DNA of 64,000 nucleotides. It comes from Styela clava (lineage: Eukaryota). The notes under the pieces were generated by a model. The model worked only from the letters and a program-made list of their open reading frames with translations, was not told the DNA's origin and ran no database searches. Shown in pieces: positions 21,801 through 44,203 of this stretch. Position numbers and translations under genes: made by a program. Position 1 is the stretch's first letter, and every line of letters begins with the position of its first letter. The stretch is from positions 15,066,001 through 15,130,000 of the forward strand of contig NC_135255.1 of the NCBI RefSeq assembly GCF_964204865.1, given 5' to 3'.

Positions 21801-24611
21801 AAAGTCATCAAACAATTGACCCGAAACCTCACAAGATGCCCCCAAGTACTACCTAAAAGCCTGTACTTCTAGAACCACTGTTAGACTCGCAAACCCCAGT
21901 TTGAAAAACCTGATTTAAACAGAATACAAAACCAAACCTGGTAAGCAATTTCATACAAGCATCCATCTTTACCACCAGTGAAAATTCTGCCAGTTTCAGT
22001 ACATACAGTGTGAACAAGATAAACATTATCTGAAGTTAATGTGAACAATGGATCTGGTAGCAAGTGCATCTCGCCGTTGACATCTAGAAATTTAAGAATT
22101 AGACGATAATTATAACTCAGCTTTATATCTATAATTCAAACTAAAATCTATATAAGATAATAATTCAGTGGCATAAGTCTCTGCATGATTCAATATTGCT
22201 GAGATATACTCCAGACCATGTTGACATAATCTTCTCCGCTAAGACCTGGATGCGGCGGCCTAGTGGTTAGAATGTTGGACTAACTATGCTGGCATAGAAG
22301 GTTACAAATTTCAAATTCAAACATAATATGTCCACCATCTTTCAAAGAGAAGGAATAAATTGGGAAGGTAAAGCCGACTCTGAAGATCATGGTCCTTCCA
22401 AACTAGTAGATGCTTGAATGTTAGTGGATGCCAATAAACTCAAAAATGTAAAAAAGTCTTGTATATGAGAAATGAATGAGATTTCCTTTATGACAGAGTG
22501 ACTTTCATTTTCGGGTTAAAATTCCCGAAATTGTTTGAAACCCTTTTAAACCCACATGCTCTCTAGCAATATCTGGGCAGTAAGATGATTTCGTTCACTC
22601 TCCTAATTGAAAGTTATATTTAAACAATACCTTCTTCTGCAAAACTGACTCCCAGAATAACAATCTCCATCGGTGTTGTCAAGACTAGAAGATATTTGAT
22701 GTGATCTCTGAATATACCTGCAATATTGAACATTAATTGATAAATACAAGAGAAGCATATAAAAAGTATGAACATGAGGTGTTCCCATATTGTCATGTAA
22801 GTGTTCCCATATATTAAAATATAACAGAAAAATATCGGGCGAGTTAAAAGGTGCACAAGGCTCAGAGAAAATATGAAATCGATTGGTCCCTCAAGTGGCG
22901 ACTGGCGAGGAAACAAATTTTTTGCAACAACACAAACAAAAATTGAGAATAATGACACACATGTACAACTCATGTACAAATAGTACAATAAAGAAAAAGT
23001 AATTGATTAAAGAGTATTGATGAAGCTTAATACTCTCCTTTAATCTAAAAGTGCGCAAATAAAAAAATAAATATCCAATGCTCACCAGGTTTGGGTTTGA
23101 CTAGTGCAACACTTAATATTGTCTCAGAGAGTCCATCAAAATAAGCTAGATCTTCTCCATCTGCATATCGCCATACAAATATATCAGAATCCACAGTCAA
23201 CCATGCTCTTCCTATTTCGGGAAAGATACCAACAATGCAATTGCATTGCATATCTTTATATTAGTGTGATGTTAAGAAATCATGTTTTCATCATATATAG
23301 GCCTATATACCACTAATATACAATATAACATTGAGTTATTACACAGAAAACTATTATAACTAAGAAATGCATGAGACCAGGCCTCCCTTACGTACGGACG
23401 TACAGTATATAAAAATGGTCAAATCTTGATAACAGGGTTATGAAAAGCAATGAATAGGCCTATTTATAGAACTTTTGAAGACTGGAATCTTTCCGTTTGT
23501 TGTACCAAGATTTCTATCTTCTATCTATTGTAAGAAGATTTCTATCTTGCCATGCCAGGGCCGAAGTTGTGTTTTCAAACCACCCTTAGTCAGAAGTTGA
23601 TATTTTTAACTTTTCGGAGTGGGAATTTTAGACTTCAAATGATGATAATTGAAGCCAAAAGTTCTGACAGAAACTCAAGAATCAGTAAGTCAACTTAGCA
23701 TTCTAAACAGACAATGGAAGTTGGCTTTCATGTACCAAACTCTAATTTTTGTTGTCAAACTTTGGTTTTCACGGGTTTCGAGCTGAAGCCTGGGTCAAAC
23801 TTTCCACCAACCTAGACTGGATATCAAACTAGTCGGAGTTGTTTTATGAAAAGCTTGAGTTTGTATATCTAGCCAGTGTAAATTTTATGTAAACTCTTGA
23901 TACCCAGATTTTGGCTATAATTTTGTTCAATTTACTCTATTGGTTTAGGCACATGAAATACATCCCTCTGCATCATTAAAAAATTGACACCCAAGAAAAA
24001 ATATTTATGAATACGACATAGCTGAGCGCATTCTAATTACCGTATCCATTTCAAATCTATATACAAAGGATACGTGCAAATTGTTCGACTAATTCGGGAG
24101 GCAGTGGTTTGTTTCGGATATCTGTGAGTTGAGGTAATCGTAAATTTGGATAATCTTCATCATGTGTTCCGCTACTGCTTCCAGAACCTTGAAAATGAAA
24201 AAGTATTGTGTTAATTAAGAAGGCTACTCGAGAGAAAAATCAATAATTGAAAAATTAATTGACTTATAGTGCCAGAATTTTCAGTGGAAACTGAAATTAA
24301 TTTGAAAAACAACATTTTTAATTATGCAGACAAAAAGATGTTTGCCAATTGCCAAGCTCATTTTATGAAAGTTAGACAGTAGCCACGAATTTCACCGCAT
24401 TGATACATATGCTAGAATAATACACTAAAAATCCTATAAGATTTTTTTAATTAAAAAAATTTGGCACAAAAAATATTGACTCACTTATTCCAGTTGCAGA
24501 AATAAGCTCAGACAAATCCAGTTGCTCCCTATCCGCCGCAAGAAATGTTTGTACAAAATTGGCAGCATCTTGAACCTCTTCTTTCAAAGGATTCTTTGTA
24601 GCTGTTGCCAT
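6816..24611 (-). CDS. NUP155: Nuclear pore complex protein Nup155 (33 coding exons traced)
   Basis: ATG at 24611 ([37 protein letters not shown]). Exons include 24611-24485, 24187-24074, 23253-23086 ([30 protein letters not shown]...[22 protein letters not shown]), 22717-22631, 22083-21938 ([18 protein letters not shown]), 21520-21415, 21061-20988, 20490-20301, 19940-19728 (LVHVRLPPG), 19643-19546, 19409-19236 and 18489-18379 (KLRPVDQL). Later exons give [31 protein letters not shown] and [24 protein letters not shown]. Last exon ends with TAA at 6816. All exons join in frame. Confidence 0.96.
10220..10533 (+). mobile_element. tRNA-derived SINE, near full-length, in a NUP155 intron
   Basis: tRNA-like head with A-box-like CGGCGGTGTGGTGC and B-box-like GGTTCATATCC. 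The body is shared with 2524-2748, 25941-26221 and a fragment at ~7285-7330. 3' tail TAAATATGTAAATCCTATCCTA. Confidence 0.75.
11598..11828. mobile_element. Palindromic MITE containing TTAGGG/CCCTAA motifs
   Basis: GGTACT..AGTATGCGAACCAAGATGGC ... GCCATTTTGGTTTCACATACTAGTACC, with internal GGTTAGGGTTAGGCCATAATTT / AAATTATGGCCTAACCCTAACC. Flanked by an apparent 8-bp TSD CAATAAAG. Related fragments at ~12945-13140 and ~59395-59490. Confidence 0.75.
14187..14380. mobile_element. Poly-G-containing hAT-like MITE remnant
   Basis: CAGGGCCGTAGCCAGG...G-run start, the same style as CAGGGGCGTAGCCAAGGGGGG at ~58594. The matching right end is not clearly preserved. Confidence 0.45.
18847..19101. mobile_element. 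Short hAT MITE in a NUP155 intron
   Basis: Ends CAGGGATGGC / GCCATCACTG. Perfect 8-bp TSD CTATATAC at 18839-18846 and 19102-19109. Confidence 0.85.
23254..24073 (-). other. U12-type (minor spliceosome) GT-AG intron 2 of NUP155
   Basis: 5' splice site GTATCCTTT (24073-24065) and branch site TTTCTTAAC (23279-23271), ~17 nt from the AG at 23255-23254, with no polypyrimidine tract. Splicing restores ...EQFA-H-MQCNC. Confidence 0.9.
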
Positions 24612-25362
24612 TAAAATTCAGGGACTAGTTACAGACCTAGCATAAGATAGAATCTGAACAAAAAGCACATTGAAATAAAGCAGTTAAATTAACTGTTATT
24701 TAAATTTTCGAAAAAAATTTGTAGAAATACCATCAGGTGACGACCAAGAAAAAAATGCAACATCAATAAATTTGAAATATTCATTTAAATGAGAAAACTA
24801 CAACATAGATGCTTCAGAAATTAGTTGATATCATAATGAAAACGCACATTGCTCACACAGTACATTACAAACATTTCTTCCAAAAAACACGAATTTCATT
24901 TTAGAAGACACTGTTTATTTTACTCCAAATTCACAAAATGAGTCGAATTCTTTATATTTTATAGCTTTGATGCTTCAACGAATAGACAGATATCTGGTGT
25001 CCAAAAATAAATGACAACCACAAAATTGATAATCGAAATAATGTTTTCCATTTATTTTGGGACACCCTTATAATTTAAAAAACCAGACTTCATCAAACTA
25101 AACAGATAAATGCATGAATCTATTAACTTCATTAGAAAACTAAGCAATTTCTAAACTACAATTGAAAAGAGACAAATTATAATGTGAAATCAGTTCGTGA
25201 TAAAGTGAAGTGTAATGAACTATAAATTTAACATTGTTTGATAGATTACTCGATGATTTTTAATTAAAAGTTACTGCAAAATAAATCTCAAGTGTAATTT
25301 TGACTGCATTTTCAAATGTGCAATTTTGAAATTCACTACAATTACAGTGAATATATGTGAAA

Positions 25363-25863
25363 TTAATCCATAACTTCGCTCCGCAAACGACAAACTGCAT
25401 AGTAGATAAGGACAGCTACGAAGATACCAACAACTTCAGATGTCAACCACAAATCTCTTGTGTTTCCAGGGTGATTGAATTCAATATCAAATAGCGACGA
25501 AAGACCAGAAGTATCTTCTTCATTTCTCATTGCTTTTCTGAGAACATTCATTCCATCATCATCAAAGAGACGTAATTTGTAGGTTCCACTTGCAGCATTA
25601 CTAGATTCTGTAACCCAACTTAGCTGATAAATATTCTGTTCTGGGGATTTGGTAACAGGATATATTTTTCCACCAACTTCTGCAAACAGTGGAAATCCTT
25701 GAGCTCCACTGCTACATTGTAACTTGAATTTCACAATGAAGGCAGTGTCATCTGACAGGCGCCTTTCAGTTGTTGTATAAGTTTCCTCTGTTACTGTATG
25801 CCTCCCACAGATGTTACCCTGCACGAGCGCTACGCATGCAATGATCAAAACGAAAATCTTCAT
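25363..25863 (-). CDS. SSR4: Translocon-associated protein subunit delta (TRAP-delta), intronless CDS
   Basis: 166 aa with signal peptide MKIFVLIIACVALVQG and a conserved Cys pair. Motifs TYTT..LSDDTAFIVKFKLQC, LFAEVGGKIYPV, YQLSW, SGTYKLRLFDDDG and LRKAMRNEED, plus a C-terminal TM (WLTSEVVGIFVAVLIYYAV), match the TRAP-delta family. Confidence 0.93.
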   Translation of the reverse strand: MKIFVLIIACVALVQGNICGRHTVTEETYTTTERRLSDDTAFIVKFKLQCSSGAQGFPLFAEVGGKIYPVTKSPEQNIYQLSWVTESSNAASGTYKLRLFDDDGMNVLRKAMRNEEDTSGLSSLFDIEFNHPGNTRDLWLTSEVVGIFVAVLIYYAVCRLRSEVMD

Positions 25864-25940
25864 CTTGTCTTTTAGTTTATTTATAATGGTGAAAAACTTT
25901 AAAACTAGGATTCAATATTCTAGTACCAAAAAACAATAAT

Positions 25941-26221
25941 TAGGATAAGATTTACATATTTATCCCGAGGGAGAGGAAAGCGATAAGATGGCTTAATCAT
26001 ACGGCGAACCAAGGCCTCTTGTTCTGTTACCAGTTCAGGTCGGGTATGGGATTGGTTAGCCAGTTATTTGAATTCGGAAGCATGAACTTGATGGTGGAGG
26101 AAGCCGTAACCGACCAGTGGTTACATAAACCACCCTACTGCCCCAGGAGTCCAGTAATCTTCTGGCACATAACCATTCCTGTATTCCTAACGCTTAGCAC
26201 GATGCGCCACACCGCCGAGCC
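25941..26221 (-). mobile_element. tRNA-derived SINE copy just upstream of SSR4
   Basis: Same family as 10220-10533. Head on + reads ...CTAACGCTTAGCACGATGCGCCACACCGCCGAGC; tail reads TAGGATAAGATTTACATATTTATCCC. Confidence 0.78.
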
Positions 26222-26717
26222 TTTCAATAGTCAATGCAACTTCACATCAGTACATAGCATTAAATGAAAAACAAATACGGTACAGTAGGGCAGTTGTGTT
26301 CCAAAATGTGTCAACATTTGGTACAATGAAACAAACACTCTGTCTGTCTCTGAAACGAGAGTGTCTGGCATGACGGCAGATTCAGATTTGAGTAACCTAC
26401 CAAAAATGAGTTTTTTCGCTGAACACTCTAGTCTAAAATGATATGATAAATTTTTTTCTTTTTCACAATATGTAAGCCCAGTCTGTCTCGTAAAGAAGGG
26501 GTTTGCACTCACTGTTATAATAGATGTCTTTTAATGTGGGGGTTAATCTTGGAATGGGATACCTAACTCTGTAACTGGGCTGTACTGAAAAAGGTTTGAA
26601 ATTGAGAAAATATCTCATTCAGTCAATATCCTGATATTTTGCGACTAATGCCCTTAACCCAGCTAATACCGCCAGTCCGGAAGTGAAATTTTAAAGCAAG
26701 TTGTCGGTTGGTCGGAG

Positions 26718-37616: not shown

Positions 37617-39289
37617 TTTTCTGGTCATTTGTGCATAAGATCATTAAGAATTCCACTTGGTGATTTGACTATTGACATGGGTTGAGGTGAGATCAGTGTT
37701 ACATCACAATGATGTAAAAGCTATACAGTGTATATACAGTGGTATAAGGTAAGAACATGAGACATAGAATATTTAAAACATTTTTACACCAAGCCCTTTC
37801 AATATTGAGTACTAGTATAGTACTATTATATTTTATATTCCACAATGGGTTTCCACATTTAACACGCCGTGAGGTAAGTCAATACGACAGACAGATCAAT
37901 CATTTTTTAACCCAATTCTTTCGGACTGGTTGCCTGAGTATGGCAATATTTACCAGTACATGAATGATTTTGGAAAGTTGGAGGAACCATTGCAATGACA
38001 AGCACAGAAGCATGTTTCAAAAGCTAAGTAACAGCCAATTGCCAGATCTATTATTTTATTAGTGAATCTGGCAGAATTTGTCTATCGTCTGATCTAAATA
38101 GAGAAAAATTCCTTTCAAATTGCACTGCAAATATATAGATATTTTCCAGTAAGTGAATCTAACATAAACTGCACCTCTATGCAACATTACTGAGAGAGCT
38201 TCATTTTTACAAATTGATTATTTTTTCATATTAGCATATTTTCAGAGGAGGCAGAGGTAGAAGTTTTTTATTTCAAAGATTTTTCTTAGTACCATATAAT
38301 CAAACTATTTTATTCCAGTACAAGGATTGTTTATTCTATATTATATATACATTTTATAATATTTTTGAACCATGCAGGTCAGCTCAATATAATATTATCT
38401 TCATCCTAAACACCAACAAATTTATATTTCAAACATTTCATATTTATCCCAATTGTGAATGATTCTATAATCACATTCCAACCTGCCACTAGTCTATAAT
38501 CCATAAAAATAGATTCCAGTTAGCTAGAATGCTGATTGGCAAAACAATCATGATTGAAAATGCACACATTAAAGAAATGATTAAATACGAGCGGGAATAA
38601 CATGCAGTGATATCTTTCCTGTCTGTCTATAGATGACAACTGAGGTACTTCCTTTACATTTTGAATTCAAGCTGTACAATGTAATTGCATGTCCTTACGA
38701 GTGCAATCTGACAATGATTTATGTTTTGCACATTCTATATACTGTGGCTACCTTATCACCAATGAATTGGACATATTTGCAACATTAAAACTAATGATTT
38801 TTTATTGCTATACTGTATTATTTTCTTGACAGCCGTTCGGATATCAAACAATGCATTGAAACAATATGTTATATCTTTTAGCACTTTAGTATGCAAGCAA
38901 TTAGAATACTAACAATTGTTTCCAACTAACAATTGTTTCCAACTAATATACGTCATTCACAGAGTCTGTATTCAAACAATTGAACACAAGCAGAAAAACA
39001 ATCACACCTGGTGAATATACACACAATGCCATTGCAGATGTTTATTTGATCTATGGACTTATTATATATTATAGAACATTCCTTTGGGGACCTGCTTCTA
39101 TGCAACATTGCTGGGATATATTAATACATACAAGTAGTGTTTTATCATATTATGACCAATCTTTAAAAAGTTTGAAGCCAAAACAGCAATAGAATATATC
39201 CTCTGTGTATGTCAGTATGTACAGCTGTAAGATTATACAGTTGGTTTATGCTATGTTTCATCCATGTAGTGCGCTTTATTGCATGCTAG

Positions 39290-39720
39290 ACTAACTTGTT
39301 TAATGAAAATGGCCGCTAACGCTCAATGTACTGATATAACGGTTTTCGAGCGCCCGTGATTTTCTCTCGCCTATCTTTCGCTGTTTCATCAACAGGCTAA
39401 GCTTTCGTATAACTCTTCATAATTCGCGCTCAATATCGGCTTTCACGCATCAACTTACAAATAAACCGTGTGCCAAACATATTACAGCCATTTGTAAAGC
39501 AATGCCGCCTCCGCGATGGCTACAAAAGTCGAACACAACACAATTTGATGGACAAGCAAAGCAACAAACCGACTGTCAATCTTCGTCACTGTGATGGCAG
39601 ATAATGGCGGACCGTGCGAGAGATGCCAGATTGACAACGTCAAAGTCACGTGATCTTTCTGGCTTATGTGATTGGTGGATAATTTGAATGGCGAAACTGT
39701 CGCTCTCGTTGCCGTCTCAA
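39290..39720 (-). promoter_or_regulatory. Putative PKNOX promoter / non-coding first exon
   Basis: CpG-enriched patch upstream of the first coding exon. Minus-strand donor-like GTAAGT at ~39453-39458; CCAAT box (ATTGG 39671-75); E-box GTCACGTGA 39645-53; YY1-like AATGGCGG 39603-10; PBX/PREP-like GATTGACAG on minus at 39573-81. Confidence 0.45.
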
Positions 39721-40344
39721 TCGACTGTTAAAACAACGTGATTGCCGTTGTGGGCTGGGATTACGATATAGAAAAAACACTCACGGACGCTGTGATAATC
39801 TCGGTATCGAGTGGCAGACAGACAAGGAAGAAGATGCATTTTCTTTGATCGTAGCATCCAATTCGTAGAGCCGGATTTATAAGGCTCTAGGGCCTGGTGA
39901 GTATAAAGCTTCATATTTTTCATGACGAATGGAAATAGATGGATAGTTTATTTTGAAAACTCCATAATACACACAAATTGAAAGTGGAGAATTCTGGAGA
40001 GCGGGCAAAACCTTTAAAAAAGTTTAAAACACGAGAAACAGAATGCGCCCGCCCACCAGCACACACAAAGTTACAATATATATCTGTATATTCCTTAATT
40101 TGAATGCCTTGAAAGGATGGAAATAAATTCAATTTTCAATCATTTGAAACTTACACTGGTACAGTAATATACAGATATATGTTGTTAATTAAAGTAATGT
40201 TTATTTTGCCCCATCCCTTAATGATATTGCGATAAACCGAAGATCTTTGGCGTCAAATGTAAACATTGATCAACGGATAATATTATTTCCAATTCTTAAA
40301 AGAATTTTACAATATGATCTATTGAATTGATCATTACTCTACAG

Positions 40345-40900
40345 CAGGCATGTCCAACCTTTTTAGTGCCACTTTCACATGACGAAACTCATTGCGGGCC
40401 TCAAACATATACCACATATACCAGTTCTGATTTACGTTAGTATTTGCGCGTCGCTGAATCAAACGCTTGGATTGCACAAAGCTGTTGCGAATATCTGAAA
40501 TCATGCATTTGTACGCAGTGACTAAATTTCAGAAGTTTTATTTAACGCAAAAATTACATACACACCATAGCAAAAAACAAACAGAAAAAAAAAACGTATA
40601 CCGGAGCCAGTAACAAAGTAGCCTACAGTAGACTTTTTATTTTACGGTTGTGATAAGGATGATCAAAGCCTACCCTACACGAAAGATATTAATCATAACG
40701 ACTTACGGTAAATTTGGGTTGCAAATTTATTCTTATAATTTTCCTCGACCAATGATCGCACAATAGCTTTCGATTTTGTTGAGCAAAACGCGCGGTCCTT
40801 CGAGAAATAAAAAAAAACATCGATGTCAACCAGGGCGCAAGATTTGGTACAAGTGTGATAAGCAGAACCGATATTGGGATATAGAGGGCCGGCACAAACA
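40345..40900. mobile_element. Decayed hAT element of the same family as 5071-6069, in opposite orientation
   Basis: Start CAGGCATGTCCAACC...TGACGAAACTCATTGCGGGCC matches the reverse complement of the 6069 end. Segment 40710-40840 matches the reverse complement of 5270-5420 (GACATCGA...TCGAAAG-TATTGTGCGATCATTG...GAATAAATTTG). The other end is not found. Confidence 0.7.
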
Positions 40901-41086
40901 AACCAAAATCACGAAATATACCTTGCTGAAATAGACAAATCGTTTATATCAGTGCTTACTATAGCCGAAGTAAATTGAAAGCGATGTCTTCAAAATTTTT
41001 AATGTTTGAATGTGAGTGTTCCTTTTCACATCCATAATACAGTTGTTTGAGTTTCACAATTTATTCGAGTAATTCTATATTATTAG

Positions 41087-41134
41087 TTTAATACTACCAA
41101 ATACTCTAAACGTAATACAACCAAACACTCAAGT
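41087..41134 (-). other. Two tandem degenerate copies of a spliced-leader-like 24-mer
   Basis: Minus strand reads ACTTGAGTGTTTGGTTGTATTACG then TTTAGAGTATTTGGTAGTATTAAA. Each is 20/24 identical to ATTGGAGTATTTGGTTGTATTAAG, the stolidobranch ascidian SL as recalled from memory. Confidence 0.6.
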
Positions 41135-41300
41135 ACAAGATCTCGAGCGAGATTTCTCAGTATTATAGGTCTTATTGGCGATTTTGCAGGTGAATGTATT
41201 ACTTTTGACATCATTATTTAAAAAAGAATATTTCTATATTTAAAAAGAGAATATTTAGGTACTTTGTTCGTTTTTTTGTATAATATCATTATGTACGATT

Positions 41301-41604
41301 ATTACTTATCGATTTTAATCGGTAAGTATGTTGATAGGTATTTGTCTGTTTGTCTGTCTGTCTGTTAGATGCACGCGATATCTCACGAAAGCAAATTTGA
41401 ATCGGCTCCAGATTTTGCATGTGCATTCATCATATGTCGGACCAGAAGCCTATTGATTTTGGATGAATTATGTCGTATAATTAGCGAGTTATTAATTGAT
41501 TAGTGATGGGACACAAGGTGTCACTATGGATCAAGAGCGCTGTTTTGGGGGATCCCCTAACTTTCGATCGATAAGTCTTCGGTCTCTGACCAATATTCTC
41601 GTTT
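41301..41604 (+). mobile_element. Helentron-associated (HINE/DINE-1-like) element
   Basis: 5' subTIR ACTTATCGAT within a hairpin, a (TCTG)n microsatellite, and 3' subTIR ATCGATAAGT followed by a short stem-loop ending in a T-rich site. A second copy lies at 43398-43650. Confidence 0.7.
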
Positions 41605-42064
41605 AGTAGTTGGTGCATTTGTCAGTGGCGTCGAAATTCGCTCGTTTTTGTAACGTTGTTGCCAGTAAGCGATAAAAGCACCAACTACAGTCTTGACCCT
41701 CTTCATTTTATTTGAAAAAAATATCCCAACAATTCGTTTGCGATTTCATAAGCTGCTTTTAAACATTTTGAAACCACCGAAAATTGAATTGACCACAATA
41801 ATTGCTAGTGAATACACGTTACAATTATACACACTGCATTCTGACTAATTTATCAAATTACTCCTCGAGCCAAAAATTGAAGAAACTTCTGTCAATGAAG
41901 TTCTACTGGTATTTTGCTCGGTTAATCCCGATTTTCTGTCGAGCTCCCAAATACATAAGGCTGTGGTGTAACCGGAATTTTCAATTTGAGGTCCAATGGC
42001 CCAGTAAAAGTAATCCATATAATGCGTTGCTCACGGTACAACCGTTCTATAGTCTAGTCTAGAT

Positions 42065-44203
42065 CAGAGGTGACGAACCTGCGGCTCGCGGGCCGCGTGC
42101 GGCCTACCAAGAAATTTCATGCTGCCCGCGAAGCTTTCAGGCGATTGAGTATATGTTTGGCTTGAAGTCAAACCTTCAGGGACTGTACAGCGAAAACGGG
42201 AGCGCCGTATTACTTATCTTACTGGGAGCGCTATTTGTATTTCCAATAATCATATTACCTTGAATTGTCTGATCATCGATACCTTTAACAATGGAAGATC
42301 TTGAAAAAATGCCTACATTTCAAAAATCGGTTAATTACCACAGGATGGATTCGTTTATAATTTCTGTATCCGGAGGCTAGCGATCTTTTGTACAAAGCCC
42401 TCGCCACTAATGCAAGAATGTGAAATTTGAGAAAAACATCACGTTCTGAAATAACAAATTAGTAATAATCAAGTTGCGGTGCGGATCGGGCTAGGAATGA
42501 TTTGCGAATTTGAATTTTTAGCTCAATCTTCATTCATAGCCCTCACCCTAAAACAGATCTCGTAATACTTATCTGAAGCATTATTAACTAGGAGAAATAG
42601 GATGAAATTTCTATGAAACTGACTGCCGTAAATAGACAGGTCCCTGGTAAAAAGCCCCATTTTCGACGAATAATGTTTTTCTGTTATGTTATGTTGTCGG
42701 GTATGGATTCTGCAGTTGCGCAAAGTATTCAATTGTCGACTAATCCGAGTCTATTTATAATGTCTTGCCTTAATAATTTAATTGTTTGTGTTAATGTAAC
42801 CTGCGGTATTTCTTCGACTTATCACGGCAATCTACGGCCATAAAACGTTTGTATTTTTGCGATGTAACTAATTATACAAATTTGATCTGGTTGTTGCAAC
42901 ACTCTCTACGCTTTGTCACAACGCTACCACCCGAGATTATTTTCGAGATAACAACGTTAGGAAAATCCTTGAATTTGCGTAAAATATCAGACTTCAATTT
43001 ACCGTGTTCCCCCGAAAATGAGACTGGGTCTTATTTCAATTTTCTTCCGAAAAATACCACTAGAGCGTATTTTCGGGGGTGTCTTCTATTTTCATTTATC
43101 AAAGACAAAATTACAAAATAGAGAATTACGAAATTTTCAAATATGCAAAATATGAAAACCAATATCCATTTACTGTTAAATAACACGTTTTTATTCAAAA
43201 TAGATGCAAAACATAGATTACAATCATTCAAAACGGGTAGGAGAGATTTTCTGCTTTCTGCTACTAGGTCAAAAAAAATTCCACTTTATTGACTAGGTCT
43301 TATTTTAAGAGGAGGGCTTATTGGACACGTCAGTGGACACAGCAATCGTTTTGCATTTATGCTGGTACTCTTCTTCTTCTGTCTGTTCTTCATCGTGCTG
43401 ATAGGTATTTGTCTGTCTTTCTGTTAGATGCACGCGATATCTCACGAAGGCGAGGTTGAATCTGCTCCAAATTGCATGTGCATTCATCATATCTCGGACC
43501 AGAAGCCTATTGATTTTGGATGAATTATGTCGTATAATTAGCGAGTTATTAATTAATTAGTGATGGGACACGCGGTGTCACTATAGAGTCATGAATCGAA
43601 ACCGCAGTTTCGATCGATAAGTCTTCGGTCTCCGACCGATATTCTCGTTCTTATTTATTGACACGTTTTTAAAAAGTCGCTTTTCTCTTTGATTACTGGA
43701 CCAATCTCTTTAAAATTTTCAGTGCTTGTATTAAAATCATTTTTTATTTCATGCTAGATCTTATTTTCGGGAAAACACGGTACAATATAAATTTATTGTA
43801 CAGTGATACCTCGGTATAGTCGATCAAAACATTCGAGTAAAAAATGATGCTGTATTCGAACGGAAATTCGGATCTCGAACACCCGAACCGAGCGGCCGAG
43901 TGAAATGACGAGAGTATACAGTTGAGAGTTTCCAAATCGTCAATTCGTCCTGATATGAAGCGCTTAGTAAAGCAAAAAAGTTTCCAAAAATCTCACTAAG
44001 ATAAACATGCATTGAATGTTCTATTTTTATTTTACGCTGCAATATATCATCAAATAACTTCAGCCGTATGGACGCAGTTGTTCGTTTTTTCCTTGAAAAT
44101 TATTAGGTATAATAGTACAGTATGACTAAAAAGTTGTGCGGCCCGCTCACTCAGCGGTGACTGATAAAATGGCCCGCGATAGCAAATGGGTTTGTCACCC
44201 CTG
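42065..44203. mobile_element. Non-autonomous hAT (Buster-like) element with nested insertions
   Basis: Ends CAGAGGTGACGAACC / GGTTTGTCACCCCTG with subterminal GGCCCGC motifs. Perfect 8-bp TSD GTCTAGAT at 42057-64 and 44204-11. Confidence 0.87.
43398..43650 (+). mobile_element. 5'-truncated HINE/DINE-like copy nested in the hAT element
   Basis: GATAGGTATTTGTCTGT...TTAGATGCACGCGATATCTCACGAA...GATCGATAAGTCTTCGGTCTCCGACCGATATTCTCGTT, highly similar to 41333-41603. Confidence 0.75.

Follow-up and report, generated by a model that had tools for sequence, protein, structure and literature searches.

A decayed pair of spliced-leader copies of probable RNA-mediated origin at the 5' end of an old dispersed repeat in the sea squirt Styela clava

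How does a chordate genome come to hold two abutting copies of a spliced leader (SL), at a place that shows none of the other parts of an SL RNA gene? The question is raised by a stretch of 64,000 nucleotides from the sea squirt Styela clava (assembly GCF_964204865.1, contig NC_135255.1, positions 15,066,001 to 15,130,000), referred to here as the window, in which two 24-mers resembling the SL lie on the minus strand. The data presented below indicate, with a probability estimated at roughly 78%, that they are decayed SL copies of RNA-mediated origin, acquired by trans-splicing, reverse transcription and re-integration. This interpretation is built on the identity of the SL, on the place of the pair at the 5' boundary of a repeat, on the AG acceptor and truncated relict observed in a sister copy of that repeat, and on the genome-wide spread of comparable sequences. 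The window locus itself is an inert, old relic with no present function as an SL gene, and the interest lies in the class of sequences to which it belongs rather than in this single locus.

The two units, both compared with the reference SL 24-mer ATTGGAGTATTTGGTTGTATTAAG, are as follows:

41134..41111, minus strand: SL relic copy 1 (5' unit), ACTTGAGTGTTTGGTTGTATTACG, 20/24 identical to the SL, followed by TT and no donor
41110..41087, minus strand: SL relic copy 2 (3' unit), TTTAGAGTATTTGGTAGTATTAAA, 20/24 identical to the SL

Read on the minus strand, their context is ...tcttgt, ACTTGAGTGTTTGGTTGTATTACG, TTTAGAGTATTTGGTAGTATTAAA, ctaata..., with the two 24-mers abutting head to tail. Copy 1 differs from the SL at positions 2, 4, 9 and 23 and copy 2 at positions 1, 4, 16 and 24. 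The copies agree with each other at 17 of 24 positions and have no derived base in common, position 4 being altered in both but to a different base in each. The letters after copy 1 are TTTAGA and those after copy 2 CTAATA, so that a GT donor stands after neither, whereas SL RNA genes elsewhere in this genome continue with GTAAGT. Each unit has undergone the same number of changes (four), a decay of 17% per copy. The adjoining element differs from its relatives by a similar amount, 10-20%.

The resemblance of the pair to the SL goes beyond chance. When the whole window was scanned on both strands, copies 1 and 2 were the only matches with up to six mismatches, and 40 windows simulated with a first-order Markov model yielded no match with up to five mismatches and nine with up to six. 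Across the genome the tandem-SL pattern was found 121 times, the window site (C6:15107096-15107122) included, against none for a reversed control. The letters, the window scan and the simulation thus confirm what a preliminary description of this DNA had noticed, namely two adjoining minus-strand 24-mers more similar to the SL than to each other, and its concern that tandem matches of equal quality might be common in control sequence is answered by the simulated and reversed controls. Tandem Repeats Finder, run with a minimum score of 30, did not call the pair, as expected for units that are 71% alike. A further candidate mark, the presence in copy 1 of G9 together with C23, was found genome-wide only in the window and at one other locus (L034/L093, C1:20924909); it was rejected as the signature of a variant SL, the two loci being otherwise unrelated, and the shared letters are probably a coincidence of sequence.

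It is very likely that the 24-mer is this genome's own SL, a conclusion that rests on gene anatomy, array organisation and printed sequence because the SL was not seen directly on RNA. In the 377-Mb genome the core common to both units has 544 occurrences and its reversed control none. Followed by GTA, the 24-mer occurs 111 times, and among the 100 occurrences listed 95 fall on one strand of C8:4.23-4.60 Mb. This region is occupied by an array of SL RNA genes (L056-L081), many of whose units are spaced by 1,634 bp and some by 1,538 bp. Regular units of the array keep an intact SL intron. In one of them (L081), TATATAA is followed by 25 nt, the 24-mer, GTAAGT, a perfect 6-bp stem (TGAGCC gtg GGCTCA) and AAATTTATGG, and the four units that were compared are nearly identical around the SL. 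The SL of the sampled array genes is complete (24/24), against 20/24 for each window unit. Of 25 genes sampled from the irregular stretch of the array (L056-L080), 23 have the promoter and SL exon followed not by the intron but by an inserted element, which begins gta[c/t]aactaaattgtgg..., the remaining two retaining the intron. One dispersed copy of this inserted element, L055, has the SL but not the promoter.

The SL consensus listed as 'Chordata 1' (PMC3795323, Table 1) consists of these 24 letters preceded by a further G, and according to that source it is identical across all seven chordate species collected there. The additional G is not encoded in the present genome. The SL quoted in the preliminary description is correct for this genome, being both the exon of the C8 array and the 'Chordata 1' leader. 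Searches against Rfam gave no match in the SL gene unit (E<=1) nor in the window (gathering threshold).

Where the pair lies is the next point. Its surroundings are a mosaic of dispersed repeats, and it sits at the 5' end of an old, interrupted copy of one of them, a non-coding repeat designated family X. The pieces concerned, starting at the junction with the SL and ending with the upstream neighbour, are:

41015..41086, minus strand: family-X 5' segment adjoining the SL; identity to L002 is 90% over window 41106..41015
40338..40999, no strand assigned: later insertion of another dispersed repeat of about 660 bp ('family Y'), 70-81% identical to L003-L020 over up to 716 nt
40159..40325, minus strand: middle piece of the same family-X copy, 76-90% identical to L085, L087, L088 and L089
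39936..40069, minus strand: 3' piece of the same family-X copy, ending near the AATAAA-like ATAAACTATC, no poly-A tail seen
41283..41330, minus strand: upstream of the SL pair, terminal part of an unrelated dispersed repeat with 35-48-nt matches at 92-100% elsewhere

Family Y, which was first seen as matches of 75-86 nt, interrupts the family-X copy. Positions 41135-41282, between the upstream repeat and the SL pair, match nothing else in the genome. A short (TGTC)n / TTTGTCTG microsatellite is located farther upstream, at 41341-41366. Family X has 35 matches in the genome and no long open reading frame (ORF). Copy 2 together with 41086..41015 is homologous to two other family-X copies, L002 and L046, both of which carry a near-perfect SL at the same junction, so that copy 2 is the positional homologue of their 5' SL. 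The window, L002 and L046 have the SL and the downstream sequence in common and unrelated upstream flanks, which places the SL at a 5' boundary. Copy 1, for its part, aligns with the upstream SL of another family-X copy, L095 (alignment A1).

Within family X the SL is joined at no fewer than three different points. The joint lies far upstream in L087, at an intermediate position of the leader in L084 and L095, and directly before AATAATATGGG in L046, L002 and the window. The most informative copy is L095 (171 nt), which reads flank, ATTGGAGTATTTGGTTGCATTAAG, TATTAGGTTGTATTAAG, TAAGGCCGCAAAATTAAATTACTAG, AATAATATGGGATT.... Its upstream SL matches the reference at 23/24 positions, and TATTAGGTTGTATTAAG corresponds to SL positions 8-24, starting just past the AG that the SL contains at positions 6-7. 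The leader of L095 runs ...AAATTACTAG (ending ...ACTAG) into AATAATATGGG where L046 has the SL immediately before AATAATATGGG, and the AG that ends this leader therefore falls exactly where the SL of L046 is found. A caveat is that L084 has AA rather than AG at the same spot. Junctions in which an SL is followed by a relict starting at position 8 occur four times in the genome and never in the control; two of the four lie on the same strand 6,541 bp apart (C8:8235376/8241917) and would be the two long terminal repeats (LTRs) of one element. Both traits of L095, the AG at the junction and an older SL that lost everything up to its internal AG and received a new SL in front, are what trans-splicing predicts, and neither slippage of DNA nor a tag from a target site explains them.

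The window pair also belongs to a class that is large in this genome and partly young. With up to three mismatches, SL matches number 866 genome-wide, against two for the reversed control, and the first 30 dispersed core matches place the same 24-mer in at least 12 unrelated flank contexts. These 30 comprise 13 LTRs of one family (family A), four repeats of a second paired family, seven singletons, two copies of an SL-like unit with a GT donor, and a LINE-like family. Among the first 100 exact SL matches listed, 49 occur in same-strand pairs, or in one triplet, 5.0-7.1 kb apart. One element, L092 (C1:13883000-13891200), is an intact Ty3/gypsy retrotransposon with a gag zf-CCHC domain, a protease and a reverse transcriptase-RNaseH-integrase; its LTRs of 754 nt are 100% identical, begin with TG and end with CA, and a target duplication of 4 bp and a polypurine tract are also present. 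Both LTRs contain a perfect SL at positions 571-594, behind a long pyrimidine tract. Twelve further LTRs of this SL-bearing family are present among L026-L050. The LTRs of Ty3/gypsy family A exist in two forms, SL|TTCTTACAG|GTGTATAA (eight LTRs) and SL|GTGTATAA (five LTRs), and the two LTRs of an element always agree in form. Since TTCTTACAG is an acceptor-like 9-mer, the two forms have the look of a downstream acceptor having been used in a later round.

In the LINE-like family (L022, L044, L047 and L048) the SL stands at the very 5' end and the upstream flanks differ. Its ORFs show coiled coils and, according to Pfam, a PHD finger (2.4e-5) and Baculo_FP_2nd (8.6e-14), and no reverse transcriptase was present within the short flanks examined of the four loci; these ORFs may be ORF1-like, the nature of the family being only partly settled. 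Family B, with pairs 5.0 kb apart, is tentatively LTR-like: its direct repeats measure 238 bp and are identical at 99.6%, and its internal ORF encodes a SAM domain and gives a PNMA match below threshold. Tandem SLs are restricted to few loci and most of them lie in arrays, with a 24-nt period on C13 and 23-nt junctions on C5. The SL-like minisatellites in question occupy C13:21733661-21735268 and 21742148 onward (period 24 nt), and C5:1574714-1582261 and C5:2098084-2098710 (23-nt junctions within a longer period). A genome scan of this kind had been recommended in the preliminary description, and it brought to light both tandem arrays with the length of the SL as their period and the SL inside retroelement LTRs.

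A separate dispersed family (L051-L054, the same as L021, L037 and others) has conserved upstream sequence and an SL with a changed first base (CTTGGAG...), followed by GTAGATTTTCC; the GT donor is kept and the 'intron' is different. This family could be a second type of SL-like gene, a pseudogene family or part of a mobile element.

Taken together, these observations suggest the following origin for the window pair. A family-X RNA would have been SL trans-spliced at a 3' splice acceptor, its original leader being replaced by the 24-nt SL. The resulting SL-capped RNA would have been reverse-transcribed by retroelement enzymes and integrated, whereby the SL became DNA. The window copy has a second SL exactly in front of the first; it would then have decayed at a neutral rate and, later, been split by a repeat insertion. 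We infer the RNA steps, the copying enzyme and the mode of the second in-phase addition. The latter may have been a further capture, using an AG next to the relict, a template jump of the reverse transcriptase, tagging at a target site, or an early duplication of 24 nt, and the equal decay of the two units does not tell these routes apart. The preliminary description had proposed a fossil of a reverse-transcribed SL-bearing RNA such as those known from dinoflagellates; the equivalence of copy 2 to the family-X 5' SL and the AG and truncated relict of L095 support the fossil, while the carrier turned out to be a non-coding repeat and not a retrogene.

Several results weigh against the RNA-mediated origin. 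An in-phase, full-length SL-SL is not readily made by trans-splicing, because an AG abutting the relict would be needed; the second SL unit of the window is full length and in phase, not cut at the internal acceptor, and the truncated downstream relict is seen in the sister copy L095 and at the four genome sites mentioned above. Where re-splicing is evident, in L095 and at those sites, the relict is truncated. Furthermore, the window has two extra nucleotides (CT) between copy 2 and AATAATAT, unlike L046. Neither a poly-A tail nor a convincing target-site duplication was recognised for the window copy, L002 or L046, for which reason the mode of integration of family-X copies is unproven; the copies are old and their 3' ends heterogeneous. 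As to the SL itself, the SL RNA region does not stand out by its fold (z = -1.6). RNA-like contigs (Logan contigs, three studies) examined over 23800-26400 of the window show exon 1 of SSR4/NUP155 properly spliced, and the SL was absent among the 24 listed loose ends (125 further ones exist) at the 5' ends of SSR4/NUP155 in these contigs, the only RNA-like material considered.

The most serious competing explanation, unlikely though still deserving of weight, is that a single SL was captured through RNA and that the second unit is a later local tandem duplication of 24 nt, by replication slippage of the intact relict, after which both units decayed. The same process would have built the SL minisatellites found elsewhere in the genome, and the 24-nt-period arrays at C13:21.73 Mb and the 23-nt junctions at C5:1.575 Mb do show that SL relics expand at the DNA level. 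The window is also the only simple in-phase pair among the 100 tandem matches listed. The lack of shared mutations requires just that duplication preceded decay; this is why the independent decay of the two copies, claimed in the preliminary description and consistent with the absence of a shared derived base, does not separate two captures from local duplication of an intact relict. Equally, the units are not more alike mutually (17/24) than to their source (20/24), as might be asked of a minisatellite, and an early duplication of the unit would still be compatible with these figures. Against slippage, such an event has no reason to be in the SL register. An out-of-register event would leave a match at the borders, but the start of the second unit (TTTA) does not match the sequence after the pair (CTAA), and neither does the end of the first unit (TACG) match the upstream flank (TTGT), both flank comparisons being blurred by decay. 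Finally, the sister copy L095 shows that family X received an SL more than once.

Considerably less probable is an origin by promoter hitch-hiking, in which an element inserted right after the SL exon of an SL RNA gene is transcribed from the promoter of that gene and carries the exon along as a 5' tag. The inserted sequence would be the element itself, or its RNA moved by a site-specific LINE; a repeat of the insertion at that position would yield the in-phase SL-SL, and a read-through RNA would then have landed off-target in the window. This route exists in the present genome and it naturally yields a full-length, in-phase SL-SL, which the trans-splicing scheme does poorly. The elements found after the SL exon in 23 of the 25 irregular-array genes, and the promoterless SL of L055, mean that some SL tags in this genome do come from read-through out of SL genes. 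For family X, however, it is unsupported, because family X and the array-resident elements have only the SL in common and none of the 35 family-X matches lies in the C8 array, insertion at the exon|intron border being a property of the array-resident family. The truncated relict and junction AG of L095 fit trans-splicing and not target-site tagging, and there is no SL-SL tandem match on C8 among the 100 of 121 listed.

Far less plausible still is a decayed SL RNA gene or pseudogene in its original place, with copy 1 as the resident exon. The sole resemblance is a TATAATA upstream of copy 1, at a distance (26 nt) comparable to that of TATATAA in the array genes, but TATA-like words are common in DNA of 35% GC. 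When the whole SL gene unit was compared with the window by BLAST, just the two SL copies matched, with no homology of promoter or intron, and neither GTAAGTTTCTGAG nor a stem or an Sm-like motif was detected in window 38000-42000. These searches largely refute the candidate, and GT after neither copy adds to them. The preliminary description had likewise held that this is not a functional SL RNA gene, and rightly so: the exon is not intact, and a GT donor, an intron, a stem, an Sm-like site and an array-type promoter are lacking.

A chance likeness in AT-rich DNA, or an SL-like fragment carried by a neighbouring hAT DNA transposon as the preliminary description had alternatively proposed, has next to nothing in its favour beyond the AT-richness of the region, given that chance is refuted by the absence of simulated matches with up to five mismatches and by reversed controls (0-2 matches against 121-866 real ones), that none of 10 ORFs in 41289-43490 has a Pfam match at E<=0.1, that no convincing terminal inverted repeats enclose the SL pair, and that copy 2 is homologous in position to the SLs of other family-X copies.

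The RNA-mediated origin of the window pair has its closest parallel in dinoflagellates, whose retrogenes carry a relict DinoSL at the 5' end. Several relicts in a row have been read there as repeated rounds of trans-splicing and retroposition, the more 5' relicts being younger and less mutated, in the account given by PMC6050394, which describes the work of Slamovits and Keeling 2008; the relict DinoSL of retrogenes is also the subject of Song et al. 2017 (PMC5585692). As in dinoflagellates, retroposed sequences here carry a DNA copy of the organism's own SL at their 5' end, and SLs standing before a relict that was truncated at the internal AG are found as well. Unlike in dinoflagellates, the host is a chordate and the carriers are mobile elements (a non-coding repeat, LINE-like elements and LTR retrotransposons) instead of protein-coding retrogenes; moreover, the second unit of the window is full length and in phase, and with four changes in both units there is no gradient towards a younger 5' copy.

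In parasitic flatworms, SL-like loci devoid of other SL RNA features have been noted in LTR and LINE elements and were read by the authors as integrated retrotransposons with trans-spliced transcripts; the relevant passages mention these loci in passing, as discarded candidates (597 loci) or as possible assembly chimeras (PMC12582326; PMC5832876). In contrast to those reports, the anatomy of the junctions is resolved here, including the AG acceptor, the truncated relict, the alternative junctions and the perfect SL in both identical LTRs of one element. A different relation between SL genes and retroelements is represented by NeSL-1, SLACS and CZAR, non-LTR retrotransposons that target SL genes. 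Elements of this SL-gene-targeting kind exist in the present genome too, and they likewise leave retroelement copies whose 5' end consists of SL exon sequence. Their tag, unlike that of family X, comes from the target site and its promoter and not from trans-splicing, and family X is unrelated in sequence to the array-resident elements and absent from the C8 array. The RNA of an LTR retrotransposon is known to be able to receive an SL from Cer1, a Ty3/gypsy element of C. elegans that can acquire SL1; according to the portion of that report drawn on here, trans-splicing there affects only a spliced subgenomic mRNA, and an SL encoded in DNA is not mentioned (PMC3315495). In Styela clava, unlike in Cer1, the SL is fixed in the DNA of the LTR.

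The kind of sequence described here is thus known from dinoflagellates and flatworms, and its occurrence in a chordate was not found reported. A literature search, outside whose reach lay most subscription papers and supplements, returned no report of SL relics in tunicates or other chordates, and no paper joining 'spliced leader' and 'Styela'. SL relics matter as the one mark proving that DNA has passed through a mature, trans-spliced RNA, a mark that in dinoflagellates allowed retroposition events to be counted and dated. Sea squirts are invertebrates closely related to the vertebrates, and the relics in one of them offer a means of telling which mobile elements are trans-spliced, of mapping past trans-splice acceptors and of following repeated cycles of splicing and reverse transcription. 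On the practical side, most SL-like matches in ascidian genomes do not represent SL genes (in the present one, the intron-keeping C8 units are the only ones that qualify), and annotation pipelines for SL RNA genes or SL-containing reads need to have the dispersed copies masked.

A broader idea, tentative and on present evidence rather doubtful, is that SL capture in this chordate is no accident but an ongoing, genome-wide process, in which a perfect DNA-encoded SL is maintained by young Ty3/gypsy elements at the U3-R border of both LTRs, behind a pyrimidine tract, so that their RNAs start with the host leader or regain it. If it were true, the elements would be mimicking trans-spliced host mRNAs for the sake of translation, export or escape from silencing, and SL relics would provide a datable record of retroposition rounds in a chordate, like that of the DinoSL relicts.

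Some minor observations concern the genes in another part of the window. A GT..AG intron (24185->24483, minus strand) after NUP155 exon 1 is confirmed by RNA-like contigs in runs X1 and X2. Such contigs also tile without a break from the 3' region of SSR4 into NUP155 exon 1 (24447-25967, minus strand), which fits a very tight gene pair. Just upstream of SSR4, positions 25940-26220 are taken up by a very high-copy repeat, with a summed contig depth of up to ~2e5 (DNA-like run X10), and many rearranged joints map to it.
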